From positions 62,001 to 126,000 of IMG/VR virus record IMGVR_UViG_3300043399_000272: 64,000 bases of DNA; one strand, written 5' to 3'. The notes beneath the pieces are model-generated. The model had not been told where the DNA came from and ran no database searches. It worked only from the letters and a program-made list of their open reading frames with translations. Numbering within the stretch: the first letter of the stretch is position 1; each line of letters opens with the position of its first letter. Of this stretch, positions 457 to 22,981 are shown one piece after another. The translations under genes and the position numbers were made by a program.

Positions 457-470
457 TTTGAAAGACTTTG

Positions 471-1130
471 ATGAAAGATAACTTACTATCCAATATTTTA
501 ATTAAGCCCAATGTCATTTCTAAAGAGGGTCTTGCCTTTATCACAGATTATGTTAGACAACAAAACAAAATTGATCTGTCTGTGTTTGATCCTGAAGAAA
601 CTAACAAGTCAGGGAAGACTTCGTTCACGGTTGACAAAAAAGTACGTGATACACAAATGATAGATATTTCTGGCATCATGGATACTATCGTAGACTTATA
701 TAGAGACATTGTTTTTAATATCATCAATCCAGCATATGATTTTGAGATTAGGGATTCTGAAGCTCCGCAGTTATTATCTTATTCAGTAGGCGGACATTAC
801 TTGCCGCACGTAGACGGTCAATCATTATGGAAAGCTCCTGACGGAGAAGTATTATGGAGGAAATCAACAGATCGTGACTTGAGTACTGTTCTTTTTCTAA
901 ACGATGATTTTGAAGGGGGTGATTTTGTATTCCCAGAACTTAGAGTCAGAATTCGTCCTGAGCCTGGTATGCTAGTATGCTTCCCTTCAACTTTTAGTTA
1001 TTTACATGGTGTAGAACCAGTAACTAAAGGACATCGTTTATCTATGGTAAATTGGATGACTGTCAAGGGTTTCACGACACTAGATGAAGAAACTAAGATT
1101 ATTAACGATAAATATAATATCAAAGGATAA
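471..1130 (+). CDS. 2OG-Fe(II) oxygenase, prolyl-4-hydroxylase-like
   Basis: HxD (PHVDG), STVLFLNDDFEGGDF, distal His and Arg (YLHGVEPVTKGHR); ATG at 471 (track starts at TTG 468). Confidence 0.9.
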   Translation: MKDNLLSNILIKPNVISKEGLAFITDYVRQQNKIDLSVFDPEETNKSGKTSFTVDKKVRDTQMIDISGIMDTIVDLYRDIVFNIINPAYDFEIRDSEAPQLLSYSVGGHYLPHVDGQSLWKAPDGEVLWRKSTDRDLSTVLFLNDDFEGGDFVFPELRVRIRPEPGMLVCFPSTFSYLHGVEPVTKGHRLSMVNWMTVKGFTTLDEETKIINDKYNIKG

Positions 1131-1506: not shown

Positions 1507-2124
1507 ATGAAGTTCAAGTATGCAGTTGTAGATGATTTCTACAATAATCCATATGATATAAGAAAATACGCACTGTCATTAGATTACCCCGAACCTTTTG
1601 AGGGATATACATATCCGGGAAGGAACTCTACGAAAAGTGTATATGACCAATCACTGCATAACGAGATAGAAAAAATTTGCGGTAGTAAACTTAGATATCC
1701 TAAATCTGATACGGAGGCGGGATATTTTAGACTTTCAACAGAAAACGACACGTTTGAACAATATATTCACGTTGATCCTGGTTGGGATATTGCTGGGGTA
1801 TTGTATTTAAATCCACCAAATCAGTGCGAAATTGAAGGTGGTACTAGTTTTTGGATGCACAAAAAATTAGGAATTGAGCATTGTCCTAGAAACCCTGAAG
1901 AAGCCGCACTATTAGGTTATGATACGTATCATAGTATTCGTGAAAACTTAATTTACGGGGACGGATTAGATGACACTAAATGGTTAAAGTACTTAATGGT
2001 TCCCATGAAGTTCAATCGTTTAGTGTTGTTCGATTCTCTTTTATGGCATAGTCACAATGCAAACTTTGGTGATAAAAAAGAAAACGCACGTTTAGTGCAG
2101 TTGTTCTTCTTAAAATACGCATAA
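1507..2124 (+). CDS. 2OG-Fe(II) oxygenase-like protein (DUF6445-like)
   Basis: HxD (YIHVDP), AGVLYLNP, GGTSFW, KFNRLVLFDSLLWHS. Confidence 0.8.
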   Translation: MKFKYAVVDDFYNNPYDIRKYALSLDYPEPFEGYTYPGRNSTKSVYDQSLHNEIEKICGSKLRYPKSDTEAGYFRLSTENDTFEQYIHVDPGWDIAGVLYLNPPNQCEIEGGTSFWMHKKLGIEHCPRNPEEAALLGYDTYHSIRENLIYGDGLDDTKWLKYLMVPMKFNRLVLFDSLLWHSHNANFGDKKENARLVQLFFLKYA

Positions 2125-3827: not shown

Positions 3828-5107
3828 TCGACATAATCATTCCAACATTATGGATGTCCAGTGACTTTGAAAAGTCGTTAGAAATGTATGTTGAGCAAGC
3901 ACTAGTTAACAAAGTCATTATCATAGACAATGCTATTAATAACAGACCTGACTTCAACGTATTGAAGAATCCTAAAATAGAGTTGATATCATATGGAAGA
4001 AACATCTACGTAAATCCTGCATGGAATGAAGGTGTTTTAAGAGCTACATCAAAAATCATTGGAATAATAAATGATGATATCAAAGTAGACAGTACTGTTT
4101 TTCAGTTAATCACAGATTTCAATTTGTCTCAGGGTGATATCATAGGTGTGAATCTTAGAGGATATCAAAACAATTACAAAATCGATGATTACATCGATAC
4201 CAAAGAAGAAATAGTAAAACTAAACTACAACGAGAATCAACCAATCGGCGGTCAAGCATGGGCGTTTGGTATTTGTATGTTTATGTTGCGTGAATCTTAT
4301 ACCCCTATACCTTCACTATATCAAGTATGGTACGGTGATGATTACTTAGCTCAACGTGCAAAAACTGTATATGCATTGAACTCTAACAAGATAAAAGGTA
4401 AGATTTCTGAAACGCTTACTAAGTTCAATGATCCAAATAGTGATGTGTCAAAAAGAATTGAATTAGACTCAAAAAACCTAATCAAATTCAATCATTTTAA
4501 GAACAGTAATAATTGGGACATTCCCCATAATATGATTAAGATGTATGCCCAACAGCGTAATCAAACACATAACTCTATATTTGAGATGGAATACCAAAAC
4601 GCAAGAAATACACCAAGTGACATTAATGAAAACGTTCACGAACTATATGAACTGGCTAAAGAATGTAAAACAGTAGTAGAAATGGGCGTTAGAACAGGTG
4701 TCAGTACAAGAGCATTCTTGAATACTGATGTTTCATTGATTTCATATGATATAGTTTTGAATTCAAACGTGCAAAGACTGTTTAATGAAGCTAAAAGAGT
4801 GGGCAAACAGGTTCAATACATAAAAGCCAATGTATTAGAGATTGAAATAGGTAACGTTGATTTGTTGTTTATTGACACATTGCACACTTACGATCAATTA
4901 AAACAAGAATTAAAACTACACGGGAACAAAGCCAATAAATATATTGCATTTCACGATACCCACACGTTTGGATTGCGGGATGAAGTCGGTAACGACAACA
5001 AAGGGCTTCTATCAGCTATTATAGAATTTTTGATGGAAAATTCTCATTGGACTTTCTACAAATACAAAACAAATAACAATGGATTAACTATCCTTAAAAG
5101 GACATAA
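3824..5107 (+). CDS. fusion of a GT2-like glycosyltransferase and a class I SAM methyltransferase (Methyltransf_24-like)
   Basis: N-terminal IIIPT, IIIDN, VNPAWN, INDD; C-terminal VVEMGVRTGVST and DLLFIDTLHTYDQL...IAFHDT. Confidence 0.75.
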   Translation: MIDIIIPTLWMSSDFEKSLEMYVEQALVNKVIIIDNAINNRPDFNVLKNPKIELISYGRNIYVNPAWNEGVLRATSKIIGIINDDIKVDSTVFQLITDFNLSQGDIIGVNLRGYQNNYKIDDYIDTKEEIVKLNYNENQPIGGQAWAFGICMFMLRESYTPIPSLYQVWYGDDYLAQRAKTVYALNSNKIKGKISETLTKFNDPNSDVSKRIELDSKNLIKFNHFKNSNNWDIPHNMIKMYAQQRNQTHNSIFEMEYQNARNTPSDINENVHELYELAKECKTVVEMGVRTGVSTRAFLNTDVSLISYDIVLNSNVQRLFNEAKRVGKQVQYIKANVLEIEIGNVDLLFIDTLHTYDQLKQELKLHGNKANKYIAFHDTHTFGLRDEVGNDNKGLLSAIIEFLMENSHWTFYKYKTNNNGLTILKRT

Positions 5108-5110
5108 TAA

Positions 5111-6010
5111 ATGAAATATAGTATTTTTCATCTACAAGGTGGAATTGGGAAACACATCGCAGCAACGGCTGTTGCCAAAGTTATTAAAAACAATCACCCT
5201 GATCGAAAACTCATAGTTGTATGTGCATATCCTGATATTTTTAACAACTTAGATTTTGTAGATAGAGTGTACCAGTTAGGTAATACCAGTTATTTTTACC
5301 AAAACTACGTACAAGACAAAGATTCTTTACTATTTCATCACGAGCCATATTACACTACAGACCATATTCACAAGAAACTACCGTTGATCCAAAACTGGTG
5401 TAAGATGTACGGTCTTACTTATAACGGTGAGAAACCTGTAATCAAGTTTAACAAACTTCAATATGATCTTTCTAAAAGATATTGGGTCAAAGGTAGTAAA
5501 CCTATCATGGTTATTCACACTAATGGTGGCATGATGACTACTGATGCGAAACCTTATGCATGGACTCGTGACATGCCGGAATCAATTGCACAAGAATTAG
5601 TTAATCACTACAAAGCAGATTACATGATCTATCAAGTTACAAAAATTAACTCACCTAAATTAAAAGGTGCTAATCATGTTTTTGCTACACAACAACAAGC
5701 ATTATCGTTGATGGAATTCTTCAGTTTAATGCTACACAGTGAAAAAAGAATTCTAATAGATTCTTCGCTTCAACACGCTGCTGCTGCATTAAATAAACCT
5801 TCAACTGTATTATGGAATGGCACAAGTCCAACTGTTTTTGGTTATGACTTACATGACAACATAACTACAAAGATTCCATACAACTTTAAACTTCCAGGAA
5901 GTTACTTGTTTGACTTTGATTTTAATGGTAATGAAATTGAATATCCATTTACTGAAGATCAAAATCTTTTTGATATAAACGAAATCATTGCGTCGGTAGA
6001 CAAACAATAA
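5111..6010 (+). CDS. glycosyltransferase, GT-B fold (GT9/heptosyltransferase-like)
   Basis: GGIGKHI, LIVV..YPDIF, ILIDSSLQHAAAAL.KPSTVLW, typical of GT9-like proteins. Confidence 0.75.
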   Translation: MKYSIFHLQGGIGKHIAATAVAKVIKNNHPDRKLIVVCAYPDIFNNLDFVDRVYQLGNTSYFYQNYVQDKDSLLFHHEPYYTTDHIHKKLPLIQNWCKMYGLTYNGEKPVIKFNKLQYDLSKRYWVKGSKPIMVIHTNGGMMTTDAKPYAWTRDMPESIAQELVNHYKADYMIYQVTKINSPKLKGANHVFATQQQALSLMEFFSLMLHSEKRILIDSSLQHAAAALNKPSTVLWNGTSPTVFGYDLHDNITTKIPYNFKLPGSYLFDFDFNGNEIEYPFTEDQNLFDINEIIASVDKQ

Positions 6011-6020
6011 GGAACAAATT

Positions 6021-6941
6021 ATGACTAAGAAAAAATATTATTTTATGGCTGGACTACCTAGAAGCGGTAGTACTATGCTATCAGCTATTTTAAATCAAAA
6101 CCCTAGATTTTATTCAGGACCTAGTTCTCCTGTAATACCTACAATGCTAGCGATAGAGAATTCTTTAAGCAATGATGAATTGTTCTTGGCTTATCCTAAA
6201 ATAGACTTTGGGAAGAATCTGATAGCTTCTGTTATGGATCATTACTACGCAGATGTAGATAAGCCAATTGTATTTGAGAAGAACCGTAGCTGGGTTAATA
6301 GAATGGAGTATATCAAAGGTTATTTTGGAATTGAACACCCTAAAGTATTGTACCCAGTACGAGATGTTTCTGAAATCTTAGCTTCATTTATATCTATGAT
6401 TAATAGAAACCCGCATATTATTAACGACCGCATCAACTTCATTGACCAGGCACTTGTTCAACAAGGCATACCAATCAATGATGTTACTCGCTGCCAAGCT
6501 ATTGCCGGTCCCGGTATCTTGGGTCAATCGTTTGATGGACTAAAGAAGGCGTTAGCTGAAGGATATAGAGCAAATATTCATTTCATTGAGTACAAAGACT
6601 TAGTTAATAATCCACGTGAAACAATGAAGAAAGTGTATGAATTCTTAGGTGAACCGGAATATCATCACGATTTTAAGAATCTAAAGAACTTGCACAGAGA
6701 AGACGATGTAAAAATCTATGGTTTTATTGACATGCACGAAGTCAGACCCGAAGTCAAATCAACAGCACTTTATCCAGAAGATGTATTACCTGCTAGTGTA
6801 TTAGACAGTGTACGTGGTGCAGAATTCTGGCGTGAAATAGATGATGTACCACTTAGTGATAGCACTGATACTGAAATTAAGCCACAACAGAGCTTTTTTG
6901 GACAAGTAATCAATGATGATAGTGATACTAAGCTAATCTAA
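6021..6941 (+). CDS. PAPS-dependent sulfotransferase family protein
   Basis: 5'-PSB loop GLPRSGSTML; 3'-PB motif VRDVSEILASF; IEYKDLV.NP. Confidence 0.85.
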   Translation: MTKKKYYFMAGLPRSGSTMLSAILNQNPRFYSGPSSPVIPTMLAIENSLSNDELFLAYPKIDFGKNLIASVMDHYYADVDKPIVFEKNRSWVNRMEYIKGYFGIEHPKVLYPVRDVSEILASFISMINRNPHIINDRINFIDQALVQQGIPINDVTRCQAIAGPGILGQSFDGLKKALAEGYRANIHFIEYKDLVNNPRETMKKVYEFLGEPEYHHDFKNLKNLHREDDVKIYGFIDMHEVRPEVKSTALYPEDVLPASVLDSVRGAEFWREIDDVPLSDSTDTEIKPQQSFFGQVINDDSDTKLI

Positions 6942-6943
6942 AC

Positions 6944-6975
6944 ATAAAGGTCTCTAAACGAGGCCTTTATTTTTT
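6944..6975 (+). terminator. intrinsic terminator
   Basis: ATAAAGGTCTC-TAAAC-GAGGCCTTTAT stem (one G-U pair) followed by a T run. Confidence 0.75.
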
Positions 6976-7041
6976 CCTACCTTTTTTTGTACATTCTTTG
7001 TTTAGGCATAAATTATAATATACATTTTATAAAGGTAAACC

Positions 7042-7266
7042 ATGGAACATCCAATTTTCAACATTCAACTTACACTTGATCAAGTAAACCTAATTCTAGC
7101 TACTGTAGGTAAATTACCATACGAGTCAATTGCCCCATTGATGAATTCTATTCAAGTTCAAGCTAGTACACAAATGCAGCAGTATAATGCTGCCACCGCA
7201 CAACAAGCAGAAGCAGAATCACAAGCATCACAAGCATCAGAAGATACAGGCAATATTATTCAATAA
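7042..7266 (+). CDS. small hypothetical protein
   Basis: 74 aa, AAAGG SD upstream, helical sequence. Confidence 0.7.
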   Translation: MEHPIFNIQLTLDQVNLILATVGKLPYESIAPLMNSIQVQASTQMQQYNAATAQQAEAESQASQASEDTGNIIQ

Positions 7267-7275
7267 GGAATAAAG

Positions 7276-8070
7276 ATGGTACAGCGTATACTAGTTATGG
7301 GTTTACCTGGTGCAGGCAAAACTTACCTGTCTCAACACATCTTAGAGCATTTACAGATCAACGGTAAAAAAGTAGGTTGGTTAAATGCGGATGATGTTCG
7401 CAAGAAGTATAACGACTGGGATTTCAGCAAGGAAGGACGTATCCGTCAAAGTTTACGCATGCGTGAACTTGCTGATTCTATGGTTGATATGGACTTTGTA
7501 ATCTGTGATTTTGTTGCACCATTGATTGAAATGCGTAACAACTTTAAAGCAGATTGGACTATTTGGGTCGACACCATAGATAAAGGTCGTTTTGAAGATA
7601 CAAACAAAGTTTTTATACCACCTGAAGTCTATGATTTCAGAATCACTGAACAAAAATCAGAATGGTGGGGTGAATTTATTGCTGCACATATGATTGATAA
7701 TCGTAGACGCCCTACTTTTGACTGGAAAAAAGAAACAGTTCAAATGTTAGGTCGTTGGCAACCATGGCACGAAGGGCATCGTGCATTGTTTGATCGTGCA
7801 ATTGCTAAAACTGGGCAAGTTGTGATTCAAATTCGTGACTGTCAAGGTTGGCAAGGTTCTAATCCTTTTGCGATTGAACAAGTCAAACACTATATCAAGC
7901 GTGATTTAGATCCTCTATATCAAGGTCAATATGAAATTCAAGTTGTTCCTAACATCGTAAACATTACATATGGGCGTGATGTTGGTTACAAGATTGAACA
8001 AGAAGTTTTTGATGATGCCATTCATTCTATTAGCGCAACGAAGATTCGTAAATCATTGGGCCTAAAGTGA
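7276..8070 (+). CDS. cysC: adenylylsulfate kinase-like domain fused to an HxGH nucleotidyltransferase domain
   Basis: P-loop GLPGAGKT, LNADDVR, DWDFSKEGRIRQ; C-terminal GRWQPWHEGH and ISATKIR. Confidence 0.75.
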   Translation: MVQRILVMGLPGAGKTYLSQHILEHLQINGKKVGWLNADDVRKKYNDWDFSKEGRIRQSLRMRELADSMVDMDFVICDFVAPLIEMRNNFKADWTIWVDTIDKGRFEDTNKVFIPPEVYDFRITEQKSEWWGEFIAAHMIDNRRRPTFDWKKETVQMLGRWQPWHEGHRALFDRAIAKTGQVVIQIRDCQGWQGSNPFAIEQVKHYIKRDLDPLYQGQYEIQVVPNIVNITYGRDVGYKIEQEVFDDAIHSISATKIRKSLGLK

Positions 8071-8499: not shown

Positions 8500-9600
8500 T
8501 TACAAGCTGGGTAACGCCTCATAATCGATTGCATCACTCATAACACCAATAACATAGTTAGTAGATTCATTCTCTTGTAACGCAGTTTGCTTTTTACTAG
8601 TATCAGAATGTTTGTTAAACCAAGGAATAGGTGTTGTCTTTGGGTGAGGTTCTGTGTACTTAATACCGATTTCTTTCAATGCACTAACCGCAGTGTAATC
8701 AACAAAATCTTTAAGAACAGTCGCATTTAGACCAATAACTGGTCCTTTTTGAAACAAGTAATCTGCCCATTCTTTTTCTTCACGAATTACATCTAAGTAA
8801 ATTTTATAAACTTCGTCTTTAGTTTCTTCTGCAATTTTAGCAAAACGTGAGTCTTCTTTAACAACTTGGTTAATTAAGAAAGCAGTCCAACCTTTGTGTA
8901 ATAGTTCGTCTTGTAGAATCAAACTGATGATGTTGCCATTACCAATAAAGATTTTGTTTTCTACCATTGCTAGACTTGTCGCAAAAGAAACCATAAATCT
9001 AAATGCTTCTAATGCATAACTAGCGTGTAGTGCTAGATAGATTGCTTTAATGTGTTCATCTTCAGTAACAGTTTCACCTAGTTCTTTGCGACAGTTAATT
9101 TGGTGTAGTGCTTCATAGTAATTACCGACGCTAGAAGCCATACTAACAATTTCTTGTGTATCATGAATAGTGTTGAATACTTCTTTAGGAACATTGTAGA
9201 TGTTACGAATAATATGGCTGTAACTACGACTATGAATGTTTGTTTCAAAGAATGTCCAGTTATAAACTAGTGCTTCTAGTTCAGGTAAACTGATTACAGG
9301 TGTAAAAATCTGACTAGGACCTCTTCCCTGTAAACTATCTAGTGCAGTCTGACGCAATAAATTACTCGTAAAAATATGACGAACAGTTTCACTAGCATCT
9401 TTGAAATCACTAGCATCTTTAGTTAAACTGATTTCTTCCGGGACCCAAAAGAATCCACGTGCAGTTTGTTCAAAATCTGCAATCTTTTTATATTTTACTT
9501 CTTCGAATCGTTGAATAGTTACCGGGCCTTCTGGGTCTAGAAACATTTTGCGACTAAGATAATCTGTTTTTGTGTTTAAGTTATATTGTGCTTGGCTCAT
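8500..9600 (-). CDS. nrdB: ribonucleotide reductase class Ia beta subunit
   Basis: LDSLQGR, ETNIHSRSY, LEAFRF, DELLH iron ligands and radical Tyr; C-terminal NYVIG. Confidence 0.97.
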   Translation of the reverse strand: MSQAQYNLNTKTDYLSRKMFLDPEGPVTIQRFEEVKYKKIADFEQTARGFFWVPEEISLTKDASDFKDASETVRHIFTSNLLRQTALDSLQGRGPSQIFTPVISLPELEALVYNWTFFETNIHSRSYSHIIRNIYNVPKEVFNTIHDTQEIVSMASSVGNYYEALHQINCRKELGETVTEDEHIKAIYLALHASYALEAFRFMVSFATSLAMVENKIFIGNGNIISLILQDELLHKGWTAFLINQVVKEDSRFAKIAEETKDEVYKIYLDVIREEKEWADYLFQKGPVIGLNATVLKDFVDYTAVSALKEIGIKYTEPHPKTTPIPWFNKHSDTSKKQTALQENESTNYVIGVMSDAIDYEALPSL

Positions 9601-10184
9601 TTTTTCTTTACATTTAAAATTATATCAGCGAATGGATCAGGTGCAGCTACTGGGTGCTTAGCACATGCTTTGGGATCTCCTTGACCTGCTTCTGTTAAGA
9701 ATTCAATTCCTTTAGCAATCTGTCCAATTGGGCAGCTACAGTCTGCAACAGTAGTACCGTTAATGGGATCTTTTTTGTATCTACACATCATACCCCAGCA
9801 ATTAGCAGACCCTTGTGCTACGTCTCCTGAGCAAGATTGAACTTTCGCTCTTGTAGCACTCTTTGGAGTTTGTACAAAGTTATTTGCTTCTTGTGGATAA
9901 TGAATGCGAGGAGCAAATAGACTCCATACTTGCGTAGTAGGATCATCTACATTACATGACCCTTTCATTACACCAGCACTTAAATCTGCAATACTAGGAC
10001 CCTCTAGTACTGGACATTTACAAACAACTTCTGGGTATGAAACACCGTTATTAGTTGTAATAGTTTTTCCAGTCTTAGTACAAGTGCTAGCCGCACACAA
10101 TGCATACTTACCATTACAAATAGTAAGATCACCGGCAAATACGGACGTTGCAAAGAATAGAAATAATAGAATAATTTTTTTCAT
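9597..10184 (-). CDS. secreted cysteine-rich hypothetical protein
   Basis: Sec-type signal peptide MKKIILLFLFFATSVFA; 12 Cys in the mature part. Confidence 0.7.
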   Translation of the reverse strand: MKKIILLFLFFATSVFAGDLTICNGKYALCAASTCTKTGKTITTNNGVSYPEVVCKCPVLEGPSIADLSAGVMKGSCNVDDPTTQVWSLFAPRIHYPQEANNFVQTPKSATRAKVQSCSGDVAQGSANCWGMMCRYKKDPINGTTVADCSCPIGQIAKGIEFLTEAGQGDPKACAKHPVAAPDPFADIILNVKKK

Positions 10185-10194
10185 AATTTTTCAC

Positions 10195-11400
10195 TTAAAA
10201 TTGATCTTCTTCAGTTGAATGTTTATTAGCAACTGTAGACTTTGCTCCAACTGCTTCACTAATTAGGTCGAAATATCCAACACCTACTTCACGTTGATGT
10301 TTGACTGTGGTAAAGCCACGGTCTTGTGCAGCAAACTCTCGTTGTTGCATTTCACTGTAACCTGCCATGCCTCTTGCCTTGTAAGCCTCTGCTAGTTCGA
10401 ATGTAGCTAAGTTTACACTATGAAAGCCTGCAAGTGTAATGAATTGGAACTTATAACCCAATTCTCCTAGTTCTCTTTGGAATGTTTCACATTCGTCTTC
10501 ACTCAAAAACTTACGCCAATTAAAACTAGGACTGCAATTATAGGCAAGCATTTGGTCAGGATACTGTGCATGGATGGCGTCAGCGAACTTTCTAGCTTGT
10601 GCGATATCAGGCGTTGAAGTTTCGAACCATAAGAGATCAGCGTAAGGGGCATAAGCAAGACCTCTGCTAATACAAGCATCAATACCGTTTTTAAATTTGT
10701 AAAAACCTTCTTCAGTTCTTTCATTGATTACAAAGTCCTTGTCTAATGGGTCGTGGTCACTAGTAATAAGTGTAGCTGCTTCGGCATCTGTTCGTGCCAT
10801 AATAACAGTATCAACACCTGCAACATCTGCTGCTAGTCGTGCAGCATTCAATGTACGAATCATTTGGCTTGTGGGTACTAGAACTTTACCACCCAAGTGA
10901 CCACATTTCTTTTCACTAGCTAATTGGTCTTCAAAGTGTACACCAGCGGCGCCTGCTTCAATCATTGCTGCCATTAGCTCATATGCATTCAATGCACCAC
11001 CGAACCCAGCTTCTGCATCTGCAACGATAGGCAAGAAATAGTCTGTTTCAACTTTGCCTTCGCTGTGTTCAATTTGGTCTGCACGACGGAAAGCGTTGTT
11101 AATACCTTTAACAACACGAGGTACAGAATCAACAGGATAGAGTGATTGATCCGGGTATGTTTGATTTGAGGTATTGTTTGCACCGGCAACTTGCCATCCT
11201 GACAAGTAAATTGCTTTTAAGCCAGCTTTAGCATGTTGTACTGCCATTTGTCCATTATATGCACCTAGTGTATTGATGTATGGTTCTGTTGCTAGCAATT
11301 CACGTAGTTTTGTCGCTCCGCGTTTCGCTAGTGTGTGTTCAATCTGTACGCTACCTTGTAGCTTTTTAACTGTGTCTTGTGTGTAGTTTCTCTTTTTCAT
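10195..11400 (-). CDS. aceA: isocitrate lyase
   Basis: [25 protein letters not shown], catalytic [27 protein letters not shown]. Confidence 0.97.
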
Positions 11401-11409
11401 TTAGTTTCC

Positions 11410-11733
11410 TTATACTCTAAAACTTTCTCCGCACCCGCATCTATCACGTTCATTCGGGTTCTTAAATTCAAATCCTTCATTCAATCCATTACGTACATAA
11501 TCAATTACGGTGCCATACAAATAAGGTCGATATTTTGGATCCATAAATACTTTGACTCCGTTGCTCTCGTGATGTTCTATGCAATGCGGGTTTTCGTTAT
11601 CTAAAAATTCAAGCACGTAAGCTAGACCACTGCAACCAGTAGTTTTAACACCTATTAGAACACCCAATCCTTTTCCGCGCTTACTGATTTGTTGTTTGAT
11701 TTTTTTAGCAGCAATATCAGTGACTGTTATCAT
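11410..11733 (-). CDS. iscA: A-type Fe-S carrier IscA
   Basis: GVKTTGCSGLAY and C-terminal CGCGESF. Confidence 0.93.
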   Translation of the reverse strand: MITVTDIAAKKIKQQISKRGKGLGVLIGVKTTGCSGLAYVLEFLDNENPHCIEHHESNGVKVFMDPKYRPYLYGTVIDYVRNGLNEGFEFKNPNERDRCGCGESFRV

Positions 11734-12103
11734 GCTTCTTCCTGTAATCTTCTACTGCGGCTTTAATAGCGTCTTCGGCTAAGATTGAACAATGAATTTT
11801 AACAGGGGGCAATGCAAGTTCTTCTGCGATTTGACTATTCTTTAATGCTGCTGCTTCGTCCAACGTTTTGCCTTTGACCCACTCAGTAACAAGACTACTG
11901 GATGCGATGGCAGAGCCACAGCCGTATGTTTTAAACTTTGCATCAGTAATAATACCATCTTCTACTTTTATCTGTAGTTTCATCACATCACCGCAAGCTG
12001 GGGCACCGACCATACCAGTACCTACATCAACGTCATCTTTTGAAAACGATCCTACATTTCTAGGATTTTCATAATGATCTATAACTGCTTCGCTATATGC
12101 CAT
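11717..12103 (-). CDS. iscU: Fe-S scaffold IscU
   Basis: YSEAVIDHYENPRNVG, APACGD, YGCGSAIASSS, LPPVKIHCS; all three Cys intact. Confidence 0.97.
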   Translation of the reverse strand: MAYSEAVIDHYENPRNVGSFSKDDVDVGTGMVGAPACGDVMKLQIKVEDGIITDAKFKTYGCGSAIASSSLVTEWVKGKTLDEAAALKNSQIAEELALPPVKIHCSILAEDAIKAAVEDYRKKHDNSH

Positions 12104-12116
12104 ATCCGTCTCCTAT

Positions 12117-12443
12117 TTAAATTGAAAAGCTACTACCACATCCACATGTAGTTTCTGCATTAGGGTTACTGATACTGAAACTACTGCCCATTAAATCTTC
12201 TTTGTAGTCAATTACTGCACCTGTCAAATATTGCATACTCATTGCATCAACTACAACTTTATATTTCTCGTCAACTGGAAATTCAAAATCATCTTCGTTT
12301 TGTTCAGGGTCAAACGTAAAACCGTACTGAAAACCTGAACACCCGCCACCTTGAACGAATGTCCTAAGTTTTAAATTTGCATCATTTTCTTCATTAAGAA
12401 GGTCAACGATTTTGAACTTTGCTGATTCTGTTATGGTAATCAT
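12117..12443 (-). CDS. erpA: A-type Fe-S carrier ErpA-like
   Basis: [16 protein letters not shown] and CGCGSSF. Confidence 0.9.
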
Positions 12444-14755
12444 AATTTACATGCTTCACAATCTTCTTCTATCAGTTCGATGTTGTTAGGTAAATCTAAA
12501 ACTGCCTCGTCTTTTTGTTTACTTCCTTGTTTATTAATCAATGAGTAATAGAATGTCTTAATACCCCACATCTGAGATTGCATTAGATTCTTAGCAATCA
12601 ATGTTGTCGGTACTTTACGACCTTCAAAATGTGCAGGATTATAGAAAGTATTTGTTGAAATAGATTGGTCAACATATGCTTGCAATACAGCGGCTGTTTT
12701 TAGATACGCATCGCAATCTTTCTGTTCCCACATTAACTGATATTTATTCTTTAACTTATGGTATTCAGGTACAACTTGAGTAAACGATCCTGCTTTACTT
12801 TCTTTGACAGTAATCAAACTCATTGGCATTTCGATACCGTTAGTTGAGTTAATAACAACGCTAGAACTTTCAACAGGTGCAATAGCCATTTGAGTAGCGT
12901 TTCGTACTCCATAAGCTCTCATTTGGGCACGAAGGCCTTCCCAATTTAACTCTGGCGTAAAGTCTGCTAATTCATTGACACCTGGTGCTCTGCGCTCCCA
13001 AGGGAAGATACCTTGACCATAATATGTCTTATCGCTATCAACACATCTACCTCTTTCCTGTGCTAACTCAACACTAGCTTCAGTCAAGTAGAATGCTTGA
13101 TGTTCCATAAAAGATTTTACTTCCTTCAGTGCTTCTTCTGTACCATACTTTAGTCCACGTTTGGCATGCCAGTAAGCTAAGTTAGTAACACCGATACCCA
13201 ATGGGCGGATCTCGTCATTGCTTAATTTACTTTGTATACTCAAGAAATCTTGGTAATCAAGTATATTGTTAAGGCTACGGTGCAAAATACGGCAAGCACG
13301 GCGCATGTCTTCTGGATTACGGAAGGCGCCCCAGTTGATTGATCCGAGTGTGCAAAGAGCGATACGACCAGAATCATCATCCAGACGTTTAAAGGGTTTA
13401 GTAGGAAGAAGTATTTCACAGCAAAGATTACTCTGGTAAATTGTATGATAATCAGGATCAAAAGGACCTTGATTCATTACGTTATCGATAAAAACTAGAT
13501 AGATACGTCCAGTGTCTGTACGCTCTTTAAGGATACCGCCCTTGAAGACTTCCTCAGCACTCATTACTTTCTTTCGAAGGCTCTTATTTTTTTCATACTT
13601 GACATATAATTCTTCAAATAATTCGGTGCTCGAATAGAAAGCCTCATAGAGGTCGGGTACCTCGTTAGGGTCGAAAAATGTGATATTTTCCTTGTTCTTA
13701 AATCTACGCCAAAAGAATGCTGATAGTACCACCCCGTAATCCATGTGTCGTACTCGTGTTTCTTCTGTTCCTTGATTGTTTTTGAGAACAATAAGGTCAT
13801 CAAATTGGTGATGCCATATGGGATAGAAAACTGTAGCACTAGCATTACGAATGCCTCCTTGTGAACAACTACGCAAATCACCGAACCACTTCTTTAAAAA
13901 AGGTATCATCCCAGTGTGCATGATTTCCCCTCCACGAATGGGAGAACCTAATGAACGTAGACGACCAATCTCTAAACCGATGCCAGCACGTTTACTAGCA
14001 TACTTTGCCATCATTTCGCCACTAGCAAAAATGGAGTCTAAATCATCATCACTGCGAATGAGTACACAACTTGAAAACTGCTTGGTAGGAGTACCAAGAC
14101 CAGCTAATACAGGTGTTGCTAATGTAAATAGCCCATCACTAGCAGCATTGTAATATTCTTTGATATAGCGCATTCTTGCGCTGTTAGGTTCTTCTTTATG
14201 AAAAACAGTAGCCGCAGCAATCATGTAACGAACTTGCGGCGTTTCATATGTTTGTTTAGTAGAACGATTGCGAACTAGGTATTTTTCAATCAATTGTTCG
14301 ATTGCAGCATACGAATACTGTTCATCTTTTGAATGGTCTAGCATGTCATCCATCTTGTCCCATTCTTCTTCTGTATACCACTCTAATAGTTCAGGTGTGT
14401 ATAAACCTGTAGCAATATTAGTTTTAACTATTTCGTACAGTCTGGGAGGTGTATAGTCGCCATAGACATCCTTACGTAGCATACTTACACGTTGTTTACC
14501 AGCAACGTATTGGTAGTTTGTGTGACCGATTTCTGGATTTGACTCTACATCGATTAAATCTACGATAGCACGTAGAGTAATTTCATCGATTTCTTTAGTA
14601 GTGATTCCATCATAAAAATGTAACTGCGATTTAATCTCAATCATACTTGAGCTAACATCTGCGATCCCTTTACAAACTTTTGCTACTTGCGCTTGCCATT
14701 TTTCTAGGTTAAGTGGTTCTTTTTTTCCAGAACGCTTAGTTACGTTTATAATCAT
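12440..14755 (-). CDS. nrdA: ribonucleotide reductase class Ia alpha subunit with N-terminal ATP cone
   Basis: VTKRSG ATP cone, QFSSC, SNLCCEI, CTLGSIN, TFYY, C-terminal CEAC. Confidence 0.97.
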
Positions 14756-14873
14756 GTGTTGCCTGTTGTGTTTTTATATTAAATTGTACTGCTTTAAAAA
14801 ATGTTTTAGATTATTACTTATCACGGATCGGACTAGTAATTCAATATATATTTTACGCTGTAGGTATGACTAA

Positions 14874-15027
14874 TAGTATATCATATACTACTCTAGGTAA
14901 CAATAGTAGTTAGAACTGTTTGGATAATCAGACATTGACTAGCTATTAGTTTGGGTAGTCAAATGTAGGAAAGGTTACAAAATTTTGTAACCTTTTTATG
15001 GTATAATATGAATAGTTCATATTATAC
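14874..15027. repeat. cluster of inverted repeats upstream of nrdA
   Basis: 17-bp palindrome 14874-14890; stem 14932-14966; perfect 26-bp palindrome 14970-14995; 12-bp stem with 3-nt loop 15001-15027. Confidence 0.85.
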
Positions 15028-15037
15028 TTATCAACAA

Positions 15038-15682
15038 TCAATCAATGTGTTTAGAAATGTCTTGTTTGATTTTGTCAATTTCCAAATACAAATCTTTGAT
15101 AGCTTCGACTAAAAATGCTGTGATGGCTGCGTAGTTAACGGTTTTCTTTTCGCCATCAGTAACTGCATTTGGCATTACTTTTTCAACTTCTTGAGCAATA
15201 ACACCGTAACTACTACCGGAACCATCTGTCCAATCGAAACTATATCCCGATATTTGTTCTAAGATTTGTCTTACTTTTTCTAACTTGACTAAGTTTGTTT
15301 TAAAGTTTCCGTCAGACAATGAGTTAAAGTCAGTAGCTGCTAGGGCGCCTGTACTTGGATTAAAATACAGTTTAGAACTTGATACGTTTGCTGAGGAAAT
15401 TGTACCTGAAGTTGCAGTAGTTAACGTTGGGTAATAGTTAGCATTAGTAGAGGTGTCATCTGTGATTGAAGTACCAGCTGACACGGTTGACCAACTCAGA
15501 ACCCCTGATCCGTTCGTAGTTAGAACTTGCCCGTTACTTCCTCCGGTGATAGTTACGTTACTGGCAGAACCAAAAATTACATTACCTGTGTTTGCAACTA
15601 CGTTACTTGTAACAGTAACTTTATTAAATGTGAAGTCGCTTGTTTCATCGACTATGTATGGTTTAATTTTTACTAATGCCAT
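15038..15682 (-). CDS. short fibre protein with C-terminal intramolecular chaperone (peptidase S74-like)
   Basis: SDGNFKTN...GYSFDW...GVIAQEVEKVMP...VNY...LVEAIKDL; one ITGGxxGQVLxTxGxGxLSW module. Confidence 0.85.
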   Translation of the reverse strand: MALVKIKPYIVDETSDFTFNKVTVTSNVVANTGNVIFGSASNVTITGGSNGQVLTTNGSGVLSWSTVSAGTSITDDTSTNANYYPTLTTATSGTISSANVSSSKLYFNPSTGALAATDFNSLSDGNFKTNLVKLEKVRQILEQISGYSFDWTDGSGSSYGVIAQEVEKVMPNAVTDGEKKTVNYAAITAFLVEAIKDLYLEIDKIKQDISKHID

Positions 15683-19313: not shown

Positions 19314-19928
19314 TTATACTTCTACTAAGATACCTTCAATTTCTAATGTTCCGTCTCCTATATCGATAGGTAAACTGAAAAGACCTTGTCTGTTTGCAGG
19401 AATCAAGTAATGCTCTGACGTATTTATTTGAAACGGCATGTACGCAGCAGTGATTATAGTAGATGATCCTTGTTCGACCCAAGATAAGTTTCCGGCTCCG
19501 TCTGTTGCTAAAACATAACCGTCAATACCACCAGATATGTGTAAATTTTCAACAGCACCTAAATTAGCACTAGATGTAGCTACAAAATTATTTGCGGTAA
19601 GAGTAGTTGTAGTTTTGTCGAAGGTTAGCCCAGCATTTCCGGCAAAAGATCCGCCGTCATTGAATTGAACTTGAGTGTTTGATCCACCAGGTGATCCTGA
19701 ACCGCCTGACTGCGGAACCCAAGACAATGAACCTGATCCGTTAGTGCTAAGTACGTAGTTAGCAGAACCACCGGTTATAGTAACATTTGATACTGAACCA
19801 AGATTTGCAGAACCTGTGACTTGTATATTACCCGAATATGTATTGGCCGTAATACTACTATTACTAGCATTCAATATAATATTACCGGTCGTTAAGCCGT
19901 TCTTAACGTTAAAATATTTTTGTGTCAC
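19314..19928 (-). CDS. short fibre-like virion protein
   Basis: GTG start; KYFNVKxG N-terminus; two TxGxGxLSW modules. Confidence 0.7.
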   Translation of the reverse strand: MTQKYFNVKNGLTTGNIILNASNSSITANTYSGNIQVTGSANLGSVSNVTITGGSANYVLSTNGSGSLSWVPQSGGSGSPGGSNTQVQFNDGGSFAGNAGLTFDKTTTTLTANNFVATSSANLGAVENLHISGGIDGYVLATDGAGNLSWVEQGSSTIITAAYMPFQINTSEHYLIPANRQGLFSLPIDIGDGTLEIEGILVEV

Positions 19929-19981
19929 AGTTCCATATTCCCTGTTGTAAGCAAATTGTAATGTAGAAACCTATATTGCTA

Positions 19982-22981
19982 TTAGATAGCAATGTAAGTA
20001 GCTACTAGTTTAACCTTTGTGTTAGCTCCTGATGCAGTTGCATACAATGCAACGTTTCCTGATACTCCGCTAACATTACTAGAAATTTCAATAATATCAG
20101 CAGTATTATTACTACAGATACTACCGTAAATTGTTACGTATGAATTAACTCCGTCATGTATTAGCAATGTTTCAACAGATTGGTATCCGTCATCACCTTC
20201 AGCACTGATAACATATTTAGCAGTTCTAAAACTAGCGGGAGCAAATTGGTCGATAACAGTGTTAGTTGTTACAGCTACGTTAGCTCTTCCTGAAGTAAAC
20301 GCAGTATTTGCTGCGGAATAGTTAGCCGCTAAATTACCAGAAACATTTAGACTTGTTAGTGTACCTACACTAGTAATATTTGGTTGTGCAGCAGTTGTTA
20401 CTGTACCTGCAGTAGTTGCCGTATTAGCAGTGCCCCATAGATTACCGATGAAGTAATTAGCTGTTGCAGCATTGCCCAAATCAGCATTAGATGCAGTAAT
20501 ATTACCAGTTACTCCTAAGTAGCCAGTTACGTTTGATCCAGTAGCAGTAACAACCATTGTTGTATTACCACCCGCAACAAGATTTACGTTACCATTAGAT
20601 ACTGGGATACTTACATTACTTGTGCCGTTAGATATAGAACTAGAGCTGAGTGTCGCCCACGATAACGTTCCGGTACCATCTGTTTGTAGATATTGACCTG
20701 AAGTACCACCAGTAATACGAACATTACCGACTGGTCCTAAACTTACGTTGCTTGCACCTGTTAGATTTACAGTACCGGTGCTTGTTAAACCAGTTAATGT
20801 ACCAACTGATGTAATATTAGGTTGTGCTGCTGTAGTTACTGTACCCGCAGTAGTTGCTGTGTTAGCAGTACCCCAGAAGTTACCGATGAAGTAATTTGCA
20901 GTTGCTGCATTACCTAAGTTTGCATTATTTGTTACAATATTACCGTTTAGTGTGACAATGTTAGTAGTATCATCAAACGTAAAGTCAGAACTTGCACCAG
21001 CATTACCAGAATTGTTAAACAGTATAGATGTATTTGTACCGGGTACAACAATGTTACCACTGATGTTACCTTGTACGTTACCGATGAAGTACGGTGCAGT
21101 AATGTTACCAGTAGATGTTAATGTACCGTTTGCTCCGCCTACTGTGATAGTGACGTTAGCAGTTGAATTACCGACAACCAATGAAGATAGAGTACCAACA
21201 CTAGTAATATTTGGTTGTGCTGCTGTTGTTAATGTACCAGTTAATAAACTTGCACCGATAGTACCTGAGTTAGCATATACATTACCTGCTGTTACGTTAG
21301 CAGTAACAGATAAACTCGATAGAGTACCAACACTAGTAATATTTGGTTGTGCCGCTGTTGTTAATGTACCAGTTAATAAACTTGCACCGATAGTACCTGA
21401 GTTAGCATAGATATTTGCAGCAGTCACGTTGCCCGTAAATACACCAATATTTGCGCCAATATTACCTACGTTTGCATTACCTGTAATATTTAATGTACCT
21501 GTACCAGTGATGCTTCCTGATTTGAACGGAGCATATGTAGCGTTAGCCCAGTCAATTACCGTAGTTGGCTCTGTAGCAACGCCGTCAAATAGTTTCCAAA
21601 CACCATCTGTGTGGTCACGAACAATACCAGTATGCTCATATGTACCATCGTTATAGCTTGCAACGATACCTAAATCTACGATATTTGCAGTATTATTAGC
21701 ACCAATATAAATTAATGGGTCACCGACTACTAAGTCAGTAACGTTTTGATAATTCAAGTTTCCAGTAACTGTTAAATTGCCTGTAATACCGACATTACCT
21801 GTAAAAGATGCGCCGCCAGCAGCAACAGTCATGCCATTAGAAATATATGCTGAACCATTAGATGATAAATTACCTACTGTTGCATTACCAGTAACACCTA
21901 AACTTGCTAGATCTCCGACACTAGTAATATTAGGTTGTGCTGCTGTTGTTAACGTACCTGTTACGAAATTCGCACTTACTAAATTAGCACCACTCAACTG
22001 AGAGCCTGAGCCACTCATTGTGATGTCACCGTCTGCTACTAAAGTCAAACTTGATAGTGTACCAACACTAGTAATATTTGGTTGTGCCGCTGTTGTTAAT
22101 GTACCAGTTAATAAACTTGCACCAATTGTACCACTATTAGCGTAAACATTACCTGATGTTACGTTACCAGTAACTGATAGTGATGATAATGTACCAACAC
22201 TAGTAATATTTGGTTGAGCCGCAGTTGTTAATGTACCAGTTACAAAGTTTGCGCTTACTAAATTTCCGCCTGATAAAGTTCCTGCACCTTCCATTGTAAC
22301 GTTCTTAACGCCCAATGTATCAGTTGTTTTATCGTATGTAAAGTTTGCATCAGCACCAAATGAACCACCGTCATTAAACTGAACTTGTGTGTTTGAACCT
22401 GCAGTACCTAAACTATTAGGAGAAGCCCAACTTAGAGTACCGGATCCATTTGTACTTAGGACATATCCTGATGTACCACCTGTAATGTGTACATTGCCTA
22501 CAGCACCTAATGCAACATTGCTTGTGCCAGTGAAGTCTACTATTCCAGTGCTGGTTAATCCAGTTAAAGTACCTAAACTAGTAATATTTGGTTGAGCAGC
22601 AGTGACAACATTTCCTGCATATGCAGCATAGTTTGCATTAGCAGTAGTGCCCGTAATATTAGCACCGTTAATACTAGATAATAATGAACCATTACCGCTG
22701 AAGAAATTCGCTGTTACTAAGTTACCTAAGTTAGCGTTTCCTGCAGTTAAATTACCTGTTACGTCTACACTAGATAGTGTACCGACACTGGTAATATTGG
22801 GTTGTGAAGAAGTTGTTAATGTACCAGTAACAAAGTTTGCGGTTGCTAAATTACCTAAGTTAGCAACTCCGCCGGCTTTAACACTAATATTACCTACATT
22901 AGCAATGTTGCCTGAGGCCGCATCTAAAGTAATATTTCCTGTTACAATACCTTGCTTAACGTTAAAATATTTTGTTGTCAT
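19982..22981 (-). CDS. long fibre-like virion protein (999 aa)
   Basis: Nine QPNITSxGxL modules; C-terminal FRTAKY...LLIHDG domain. Confidence 0.8.
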   Translation of the reverse strand: MTTKYFNVKQGIVTGNITLDAASGNIANVGNISVKAGGVANLGNLATANFVTGTLTTSSQPNITSVGTLSSVDVTGNLTAGNANLGNLVTANFFSGNGSLLSSINGANITGTTANANYAAYAGNVVTAAQPNITSLGTLTGLTSTGIVDFTGTSNVALGAVGNVHITGGTSGYVLSTNGSGTLSWASPNSLGTAGSNTQVQFNDGGSFGADANFTYDKTTDTLGVKNVTMEGAGTLSGGNLVSANFVTGTLTTAAQPNITSVGTLSSLSVTGNVTSGNVYANSGTIGASLLTGTLTTAAQPNITSVGTLSSLTLVADGDITMSGSGSQLSGANLVSANFVTGTLTTAAQPNITSVGDLASLGVTGNATVGNLSSNGSAYISNGMTVAAGGASFTGNVGITGNLTVTGNLNYQNVTDLVVGDPLIYIGANNTANIVDLGIVASYNDGTYEHTGIVRDHTDGVWKLFDGVATEPTTVIDWANATYAPFKSGSITGTGTLNITGNANVGNIGANIGVFTGNVTAANIYANSGTIGASLLTGTLTTAAQPNITSVGTLSSLSVTANVTAGNVYANSGTIGASLLTGTLTTAAQPNITSVGTLSSLVVGNSTANVTITVGGANGTLTSTGNITAPYFIGNVQGNISGNIVVPGTNTSILFNNSGNAGASSDFTFDDTTNIVTLNGNIVTNNANLGNAATANYFIGNFWGTANTATTAGTVTTAAQPNITSVGTLTGLTSTGTVNLTGASNVSLGPVGNVRITGGTSGQYLQTDGTGTLSWATLSSSSISNGTSNVSIPVSNGNVNLVAGGNTTMVVTATGSNVTGYLGVTGNITASNADLGNAATANYFIGNLWGTANTATTAGTVTTAAQPNITSVGTLTSLNVSGNLAANYSAANTAFTSGRANVAVTTNTVIDQFAPASFRTAKYVISAEGDDGYQSVETLLIHDGVNSYVTIYGSICSNNTADIIEISSNVSGVSGNVALYATASGANTKVKLVATYIAI
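21186..21409. repeat. near-perfect coding direct repeat (92 nt, period 132 nt; third partial copy at 22053-22123)
   Basis: 21186-21277 vs 21318-21409 match at 91/92 positions; 22053-22123 matches 70/71. Confidence 0.9.

Follow-up and report, generated by a model that had tools for sequence, protein, structure and literature searches.

Why would a phage carry isocitrate lyase (ICL), the committed step of the glyoxylate shunt and a major switch in bacterial carbon use, and no malate synthase? The question is raised by a gene on the minus strand (10195..11400) of a 64,000-nucleotide window, the term used here for the whole stretch of DNA analyzed. The window corresponds to bases 62001-126000 of the 260,148-bp IMG/VR virus record IMGVR_UViG_3300043399_000272 (CheckV completeness estimate 74%). 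The gene starts with ATG and encodes a 401-residue ICL of an N-terminally short, phage-clade form, identified by Pfam, PDB comparison and sequence motifs. The answer favored here, with a probability of roughly 0.55, is that the phage would open the glyoxylate branch under its own control, making ICL together with its nucleotide-synthesis genes and leaving the second step to host enzymes.

Identity and phage origin of the isocitrate lyase

Pfam comparison was used to assign the 401-residue protein to the ICL family (PF00463), which it matches at 345.8 bits (curated cut-off 26; E 5e-103). The match comes as two stretches, as expected for prokaryotic enzymes without the eukaryotic insert, and a six-frame search gives a result identical to the ORF-based one. 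A PDB search returned bacterial ICLs at E 1e-151 to 3e-170. The identity to the solved enzymes compared (6lrp, 7cmx, 3i4e, 5dql, 1f61/1f8i, 3e5b and 1igw) is ~61-68% (about 65%) over ~398 residues with nearly no gaps, which makes the fold of the phage ICL certain. The ICL motifs are SGW (residues 67-69), YPDQ (82-85), a ten-residue motif (126-135), FEDQ (156-159), ARTDA (202-206), WFET (258-261), NCSPSFNW (288-295), FITLAGFH (320-327) and the C-terminal lid STEEDQF (395-401). The catalytic-loop motif KKCGH (164-168), with the active-site cysteine, aligns to the loop in the solved enzymes. The motifs that carry the catalytic Cys/His loop and the Mg2+ and substrate ligands are all present and correspond column for column with 5dql/1f61; we take the ligand residues of the M. 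tuberculosis enzyme to be S91/G92/W93, D108, D153, E155, E182, R228, E285, N313/S315/S317 and T347. Across 155 viral and 111 cellular ICL sequences, 139 of the 401 positions are universally conserved. The gene most likely encodes a catalytically competent ICL, and a first-pass annotation of this DNA was right to describe the enzyme as intact with its full catalytic motifs.

The same annotation had remarked that the N-terminus looked shorter than that of bacterial AceA, and the alignments bear this out. They start at phage residue 3-4, which corresponds to residue 24-36 of the solved enzymes, and reach the last residue. The N-terminal segment of ~17-27 residues that is typical of cellular ICLs, and is non-catalytic, is absent from the phage protein. 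A 9-nt spacer (11401..11411, minus strand) follows the stop codon of the preceding iscA gene and contains an AAGGA Shine-Dalgarno-like site 6 nt before the ICL ATG. The in-frame TAA directly upstream of the ATG indicates that the short N-terminus is real and not a mis-called start. The missing segment is a variant feature and gives no ground to exclude the protein from the ICL family. A predicted homodimer model gave an ipSAE of 0.77 compared with 0.00 for the best of three controls, with pLDDT of at least 92; the ipSAE mark was attained by 21 of the 30 solved homodimers and by none of the 23 monomers, and prior exposure of the model to solved ICLs may account for part of the score. The three runs have at least 97% of contacts in common. 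The predicted interface has ~390 contacts and includes residues 321-377 and 385-401, the latter being the C-terminal lid.

The DNA runs that hold the record are freshwater metagenomes. The window encodes a gp23-type (T4-type) major capsid protein, a portal protein and an SbcC-like nuclease, and these genes, in an IMG/VR virus record, confirm that the ICL is phage-encoded. In its capsid protein the phage is close to cultured jumbo phages of Proteobacteria, with 65-69% identity to Vibrio phage 2.275.O, PA5oct-like Pseudomonas phages and PBECO4-like Escherichia phages. The best 120 matches to the ICL in a search of 5.8 billion proteins are all metagenomic, 401-409 residues long and 92-100% identical. 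IMG/VR holds ~180 stretches with an ICL that is 88-100% identical, some of them in 338-kb and 374-kb contigs. The capsid genes of these 338-374-kb relatives are 79-81% identical to that of the window, capsid protein identity among the window's relatives overall is 79-89%, and the inspected contexts of related ICLs are phage-like. The best identity to a cellular ICL is 66% among 301 sampled Bacteroidota, 68% among 401 sampled Pseudomonadota and 67% among pattern-matched Streptomyces and other Actinomycetota. A megablast comparison of the 7-kb ICL region with cultured phages gave no match.

The base composition and substitution pattern of the gene were compared with those of the phage genome and of the related loci. 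At 0.274, the third-position GC content (GC3) of the ICL gene agrees with the mean for the genome (0.291 +/- 0.049), and its codon usage, which ranks 41st of 62 similar-sized genes, is likewise typical for this phage. ICL codon usage is thus ameliorated to the phage. Across 83 relatives, the median dN is 0.068, dS is saturated (median 1.7, finite in 67 pairs) and the median dN/dS is 0.039. Of 164 viral loci, 158 keep an uninterrupted reading frame; contig ends cut the remaining six. The phage ICL evolves under strong purifying selection. The gene is a phage auxiliary metabolic gene in that a host-type gene has phage genes on both sides and is maintained by selection. The concern raised in the first-pass annotation, that the gene might be a host fragment, is answered by the phage-only clade described below, the 68% cellular maximum and the phage-like codon usage.

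The first-pass annotation had also considered ICL an uncommon auxiliary metabolic gene, and this judgment is not supported. In addition to the ~180 stretches related to the window, a second IMG/VR group of 98 stretches surrounds the cultured phage C48C1 (OQ984149.1, Kyanoviridae, 156 kb), and phage ICLs are already published. The gene is rare only in cultured phages: a collection of 50,697 records contains one genuine phage ICL, that of C48C1, and the other matches are bacterial records or fragments. The occurrence of ICL in hundreds of viral contigs, with 88-100% protein identity despite saturated synonymous sites, suggests that re-routing the host tricarboxylic acid (TCA) cycle at isocitrate is important. 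This would apply to a widespread group of large phages from freshwater and other aquatic habitats, and hence to the carbon flow through infected cells.

Missing partner enzymes, gene neighborhood and proposed role

The first-pass annotation had reported no malate synthase in the window and had proposed a search of the rest of the genome for aceB or glcB. The malate synthase family (PF01274) has no match at E<=1 in the whole 260-kb record, and a tblastn search with Salmonella AceB has no match either. PF01274 was likewise not found in the 374-kb (100% complete) and 338-kb (97% complete) relatives, a 183-kb fragment, a 160-kb phage of the second ICL group or the complete C48C1 genome, so the absence holds well beyond the window. 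The other partner enzymes were searched in five genomes: the 260-kb record, the 374-kb and 338-kb relatives, the 160-kb phage and C48C1. These genomes contain no match to isocitrate dehydrogenase (PF00180), aconitase (PF00330), or aminotransferases of class V (PF00266) and class I/II (PF00155), and only sub-threshold matches to the D-2-hydroxyacid dehydrogenase/glyoxylate reductase family (PF02826). AceB-like genes flank 0 of 163 viral-clade ICL loci compared with 76 of 120 cellular ICL loci. The phage genomes examined therefore have no aceB-aceA shunt operon, with malate synthase neither beside ICL nor elsewhere in the genome. Because no glyoxylate-consuming enzyme was found in the phage, the second step must fall to host enzymes.

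The ICL gene lies in a single-strand string with the order nrdA - iscA - iscU - iscA - ICL - orf195 - nrdB, in which the gaps and overlaps range from -17 to +13 nt. The first gene encodes a 771-residue, nrdA-like large subunit of class I ribonucleotide reductase (RNR; 12440..14755, minus strand), whose homologues carry the ATP-cone, Ribonuc_red_lgN and Ribonuc_red_lgC domains, and overlaps the next gene by 4 nt. Three iron-sulfur genes follow on the same strand: an IscA-like Fe-S biosynthesis protein of 108 residues (12117..12443; PF01521), an IscU/NifU-N scaffold protein of 128 residues (11717..12103; PF01592, 177 bits) and a second IscA-like protein of 107 residues (11410..11733; PF01521) that ends 9 nt before the ICL start. 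Downstream, a 195-residue Cys-rich protein (orf195; 9597..10184, minus strand) with a hydrophobic, signal-peptide-like N-terminus and no Pfam family begins 10 nt past the ICL stop and overlaps nrdB by 4 nt. Only 8 of 83 related loci contain orf195, which is therefore no regular companion of ICL. The last gene of the string encodes the 366-residue, nrdB-like small subunit of RNR (8500..9600, minus strand; PF00268).

A promoter scan found two weak sigma-70-like matches in the intergenic region upstream of nrdA (14843..14903, minus strand). No other site is plausible for a promoter of the seven genes, but the match count is no better than in shuffled sequence. No minus-strand terminator-like site was detected inside the string by a scan whose terminator counts are no better than those of shuffled sequence. 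The tight packing on one strand makes it most likely that ICL is co-transcribed with nrdA, nrdB and the IscU/IscA genes, and thus with the nucleotide-synthesis genes of the phage. In the window's subclade, most loci place ICL between nrdA and nrdB. Of 34 related loci whose flanks extend 4 kb or more in both directions, 21 have both RNR genes, and the gene order seen most often is nrdA-ICL-nrdB. IscU occurs within 6 kb of ICL in 13 of these 34 full-flank loci; the corresponding figure for the second subclade is 17 of 81. A cysteine desulfurase (Aminotran_5) was found neither in this genome nor in the four related phage genomes, and the sulfur for the IscA-IscU-IscA trio must therefore come from host IscS or SufS. 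In the 338-kb relative (L004, locus 19520-20877), genes for ClpS, an HSP20-family protein and ribosomal protein bS21 lie near ICL, and a fatty-acid desaturase gene is directly downstream of it.

In the favored mechanism, ICL would split isocitrate into succinate and glyoxylate under phage rather than host control, opening the glyoxylate branch at its committed step independently of host regulation. The two CO2-releasing, NAD(P)H-producing steps of the TCA cycle would be avoided and carbon conserved. C4 skeletons would be supplied (succinate to oxaloacetate to aspartate) for pyrimidine and purine synthesis, and host enzymes, most simply host malate synthase, would remove the glyoxylate.

Several points weigh against this mechanism. 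Host malate synthase is an assumption, and the only hint of the host is a betaproteobacterial-type tmRNA, a weak clue. Diverting isocitrate from isocitrate dehydrogenase lowers the NADPH that RNR ultimately needs, so a connection with nucleotide synthesis cannot be taken for granted. In the second viral subclade, which has no RNR nearby, and in some members of the first, ICL is not adjacent to nrd genes, and the operon position may thus be historical rather than functional. Metatranscriptome contigs match at only 80-90% and in short pieces, and DNA carry-over is possible; the short matching contigs come from four RNA-labelled runs, two of which are probably DNA. The loss of the N-terminal segment may bear on tetramer formation or regulation.

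The lack of malate synthase in every phage genome checked is compatible with another fate for glyoxylate, already suggested in the first-pass annotation: its transamination to glycine, which would feed purine and one-carbon metabolism and make ICL a glycine and purine supply enzyme. ICL has nucleotide-metabolism genes as neighbors, nrdA and nrdB in the window and those for dCMP deaminase and glutaredoxin in relatives, which fits this route. Its probability is nevertheless low: the five phage genomes have no class V or class I/II aminotransferase, and the route depends on the host as much as the malate-synthase route does. The sequence offers nothing that separates the two routes.

In bacteria, the glyoxylate shunt has a role in oxidative stress and when iron is limiting. 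The main benefit to the phage could be relief of stress and not carbon: with the NADH-generating TCA steps bypassed, respiratory demand, oxidative stress or iron demand would fall, and ICL would then belong with IscU/IscA and the di-iron RNR to an 'iron/redox' module. Three Isc genes stand between nrdA and ICL in the window, IscU/IscA genes recur near ICL in both viral subclades, and genes for a NifU-like protein and a peroxiredoxin lie no more than 4 kb from the C48C1 ICL. The linkage of Isc genes to ICL is far from universal, however, and no cysteine desulfurase is encoded. This explanation, which we consider about as improbable as the glycine route, is compatible with phage control of the glyoxylate branch and is no exclusive alternative to it.

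The ICL reaction is reversible, and the enzyme could act mainly as a glyoxylate buffer that condenses succinate with glyoxylate, which might derive from algal glycolate imported by the host, to form isocitrate, feeding 2-oxoglutarate (2OG), glutamate and the 2OG-Fe(II) oxygenases of the phage. The window encodes one such oxygenase (468-1130, plus strand) and, close by, a DUF6445 protein (1507-2124, plus strand), which we take to be 2OG-oxygenase-like, and no phage enzyme was found that draws glyoxylate away. This idea is purely inferential, and because known ICLs run in the cleavage direction in vivo we regard it as very unlikely. The 2OG-Fe(II) oxygenases consume 2-oxoglutarate and release succinate.

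There is even less reason to regard the protein as a 2-methylisocitrate lyase or another lyase of the PEP-mutase superfamily that detoxifies propionyl-CoA products. Some ICLs, such as M. tuberculosis ICL1, accept methylisocitrate, and superfamily kinship is evident in a Pfam PEP_mutase match of 68 bits and PDB matches to methylisocitrate lyases at E 1e-20. The ICL matches are better by ~150 orders of magnitude, and the KKCGH loop, the length and the C-terminal lid are of the ICL type. That the gene is host DNA in a chimeric or misbinned contig, or a decaying passenger, is scarcely credible and was excluded on the basis of the phage genes on both sides, the same gene in ~180 viral contigs including the 338-374-kb genomes, the 68% cellular maximum, the phage-like GC3 and codon usage and a dN/dS of 0.04, although one viral-database contig with a Bacteroidota-like aceB-aceA pair (L253, described below) may be such a case.

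Host clues and the viral ICL clade

The phage tmRNA was compared with Rfam models as a clue to the host. It is a two-piece (permuted) RNA at G000:C1:154113-154498 (= L287:514-899) with the tag peptide ANAANDEVFALAA. It matches beta_tmRNA at 99 bits (gathering cut-off 84) and tmRNA_permuted at 120 bits. Weaker full-length tmRNA matches occur in the 374-kb relative and in the 160-kb phage of the second ICL group. The beta-type tmRNA may hint at a betaproteobacterial host. Host prediction by tmRNA BLAST against 401 genomes of one order was tried and rejected, as it returned only matches of 28-55 nt.

This order, that of a Parazoarcus genome and the one candidate host order covered, was sampled for malate synthase and ICL in 301 genomes. 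Malate synthase is present in 204 of the 301 genomes and ICL in 181. Hand comparison of the two lists gives ~167 genomes with both enzymes, ~37 with malate synthase only, ~14 with ICL only and ~83 with neither; these tallies include one unpublished genome (G983) with both, on which no other result depends. If the hosts belong to this order, most have the full shunt, and the phage ICL would be an extra, phage-timed isozyme and not a missing step. Those ICLs in the tree whose genomes also belong to these sampled lists sit elsewhere than the viral clade, and ICL phylogeny therefore does not predict the host.

The record as a whole carries 46 tRNA genes, the two-piece tmRNA and an ORF of 5439 residues, which begins in the window at 55559 and runs past the window end to G000:C1:133878. 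A block of 45 tRNA genes lies at G000:C1:8642-24649 and includes one ARAGORN call with the four-base anticodon ctcc (15334-15433). The separate tRNA at G000:C1:160460-160533 has a CUA anticodon (called tRNA-Pyl) and is a potential amber suppressor. In the window, a sulfotransferase (PF13469/PF00685; 6021-6941, plus strand) adjoins a 264-residue protein with an APS-kinase-like N-terminal P-loop (7276-8070, plus strand), and the two may form a phage sulfation module.

A careful IQ-TREE phylogeny was calculated from 105 sequences, 47 viral and 58 cellular. Distant outgroups gave very long branches and long-branch warnings and were dropped, which leaves the tree unrooted. A branch with 100/99 support sets the viral ICLs of both groups apart from the other sequences, with contig L253 as the sole exception. 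The start position (MKKR...) is common to both viral groups, and cellular enzymes reach 17-27 residues further. No N-terminal extension is possible in 75 of 83 first-group loci, and only 0-1 residue can be added in 65 of 75 second-group loci. Both viral subclades also have in common substitutions at positions with 91-100% conservation among cellular enzymes: W33R, L48Y, D74A/S, P197D, T374V and V380I in the numbering of the window's ICL. By hand count, 8 of 17 clade-specific substitutions lie in the predicted dimer interface, compared with ~5.5 expected, an enrichment that is not convincing.

The cellular neighbors of the viral clade are Pseudomonadota sequences: four group with it at 91/82 support, and fourteen do so at 93/96. 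The genomes of all fourteen neighbors carry alphaproteobacterial-type tmRNA at 196-307 bits (cut-off 50), which among the named control genomes is found only in Caulobacter. The viral ICLs thus group with alphaproteobacterial enzymes in the unrooted tree; nesting within the Alphaproteobacteria assumes that the root is placed elsewhere in it. The phylogenetic check against bacterial AceA that the first-pass annotation had proposed therefore succeeded in part: a phage clade was recovered, and the host prediction failed in that the ICL has alphaproteobacterial affinity whereas the phage tmRNA is betaproteobacterial-type. A 50%-identity representative search, tried for finer placement, was set aside because the phage ICL clusters with ordinary bacterial AceA (representative 62% identical).

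Two cellular ICLs near the viral clade, L267 and L275 (genomes G330 and G502, both alpha_tmRNA-positive), have a short N-terminus that extends ~7 residues beyond the viral start. L267 has R at query position 33, where other cellular enzymes have W. They could represent the lineage that donated the gene, or a transfer back from phages. The ICL of the exceptional contig L253 (IMGVR_UViG_3300025133_007637, locus 4441-7206) groups with Bacteroidota, keeps the N-terminal extension and lies directly downstream of an aceB-like gene whose product is 50% identical to Salmonella AceB. L253 is either an independent aceBA capture or a bacterial contig.

Capsid identity between the two phage groups is 35-36%. 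A derived ICL form common to phages with such different capsids is best explained, from these comparisons, by a single capture followed by transfer among phages. A more speculative proposal is that aquatic myoviruses have an ICL lineage of their own, derived from one ancient and probably alphaproteobacterial capture, that lost the N-terminal segment, moved between unrelated groups (freshwater jumbo and ~150-kb T4-like phages) and is strongly constrained. The truncation and the clade-specific substitutions, several of them in the predicted subunit interface, could then free the enzyme from host regulation or from mixing with host subunits, making it a phage-tailored metabolic valve in a nucleotide-synthesis operon. 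We hold this extended version only tentatively and consider it clearly less probable than phage control of the glyoxylate branch alone.

Comparison with known systems

The closest cellular counterpart of the phage enzyme is the bacterial group-I AceA/ICL1. The two agree in every motif for catalysis and ligand binding, among them KKCGH and the C-terminal lid. The phage protein differs in that it is without the 17-27 N-terminal residues that nearly all sampled cellular enzymes have, and its clade carries its own substitutions at near-invariant positions. It is also not beside aceB or aceK, whereas cellular ICL has aceB alongside in 76 of 120 loci. The PrpB/PEP-mutase lyases have the superfamily fold, a related catalytic loop and weak PDB matches (E 1e-20 to 1e-12), but they are ~290-320 residues long and the phage protein has the length of an ICL and an ICL-specific C-terminal half. 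PrpB was rejected as the family of the phage protein because PrpB structures cover only residues ~30-210, at E 1e-15 to 1e-20.

The nearest cultured relative is the C48C1 protein WJE87928.1, annotated as a 'hypothetical protein', which is 63% identical and falls within the viral clade. Its start is truncated in the same way (MKKR...), and the complete C48C1 genome also has no malate synthase. C48C1 belongs to the other phage group, with a capsid protein identity of only 35%, and its ICL is not between RNR genes. A literature search on phage C48C1 found nothing.

Phage ICLs have been described before, according to the portions of the publications available to us. Viral aceA and aceB were seen in ocean viromes (PMC4053976), an aceBA operon was found in a 179-kb marine T4-like virus (PMC5332604), and ICL was noted in Ross Ice Shelf viruses assigned to Pelagibacter and Woeseiales (PMC10721903). 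A 2025 preprint on huge phages counts 98 ICL and 22 malate synthase genes in 98 huge phages and places malate synthase only in marine, soil and plant-associated samples (10.1101/2025.02.27.640493). That distribution, as given in the available part of the survey, implies that its freshwater huge phages are ICL-only, as is the phage described here. These published cases and the present gene represent one phenomenon: a large aquatic myovirus that carries an ICL. The marine aceBA virus, in the account available (PMC5332604), differs in having malate synthase beside ICL, an arrangement found at 0 of the 163 viral-clade loci analyzed here. Phage ICL, including that of ICL-only freshwater huge phages, is therefore already published, and the present gene is a well-supported example.

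Relative to the accessible parts of these accounts, the single viral clade, its common truncation, the alphaproteobacterial affinity, the strength of purifying selection and the nrd-operon position appear to be new. The value of the present case is confirmation together with detail: every tested partner enzyme is absent, and the ICL belongs to one viral clade, has a defined truncated form and occupies a position within an nrd operon.

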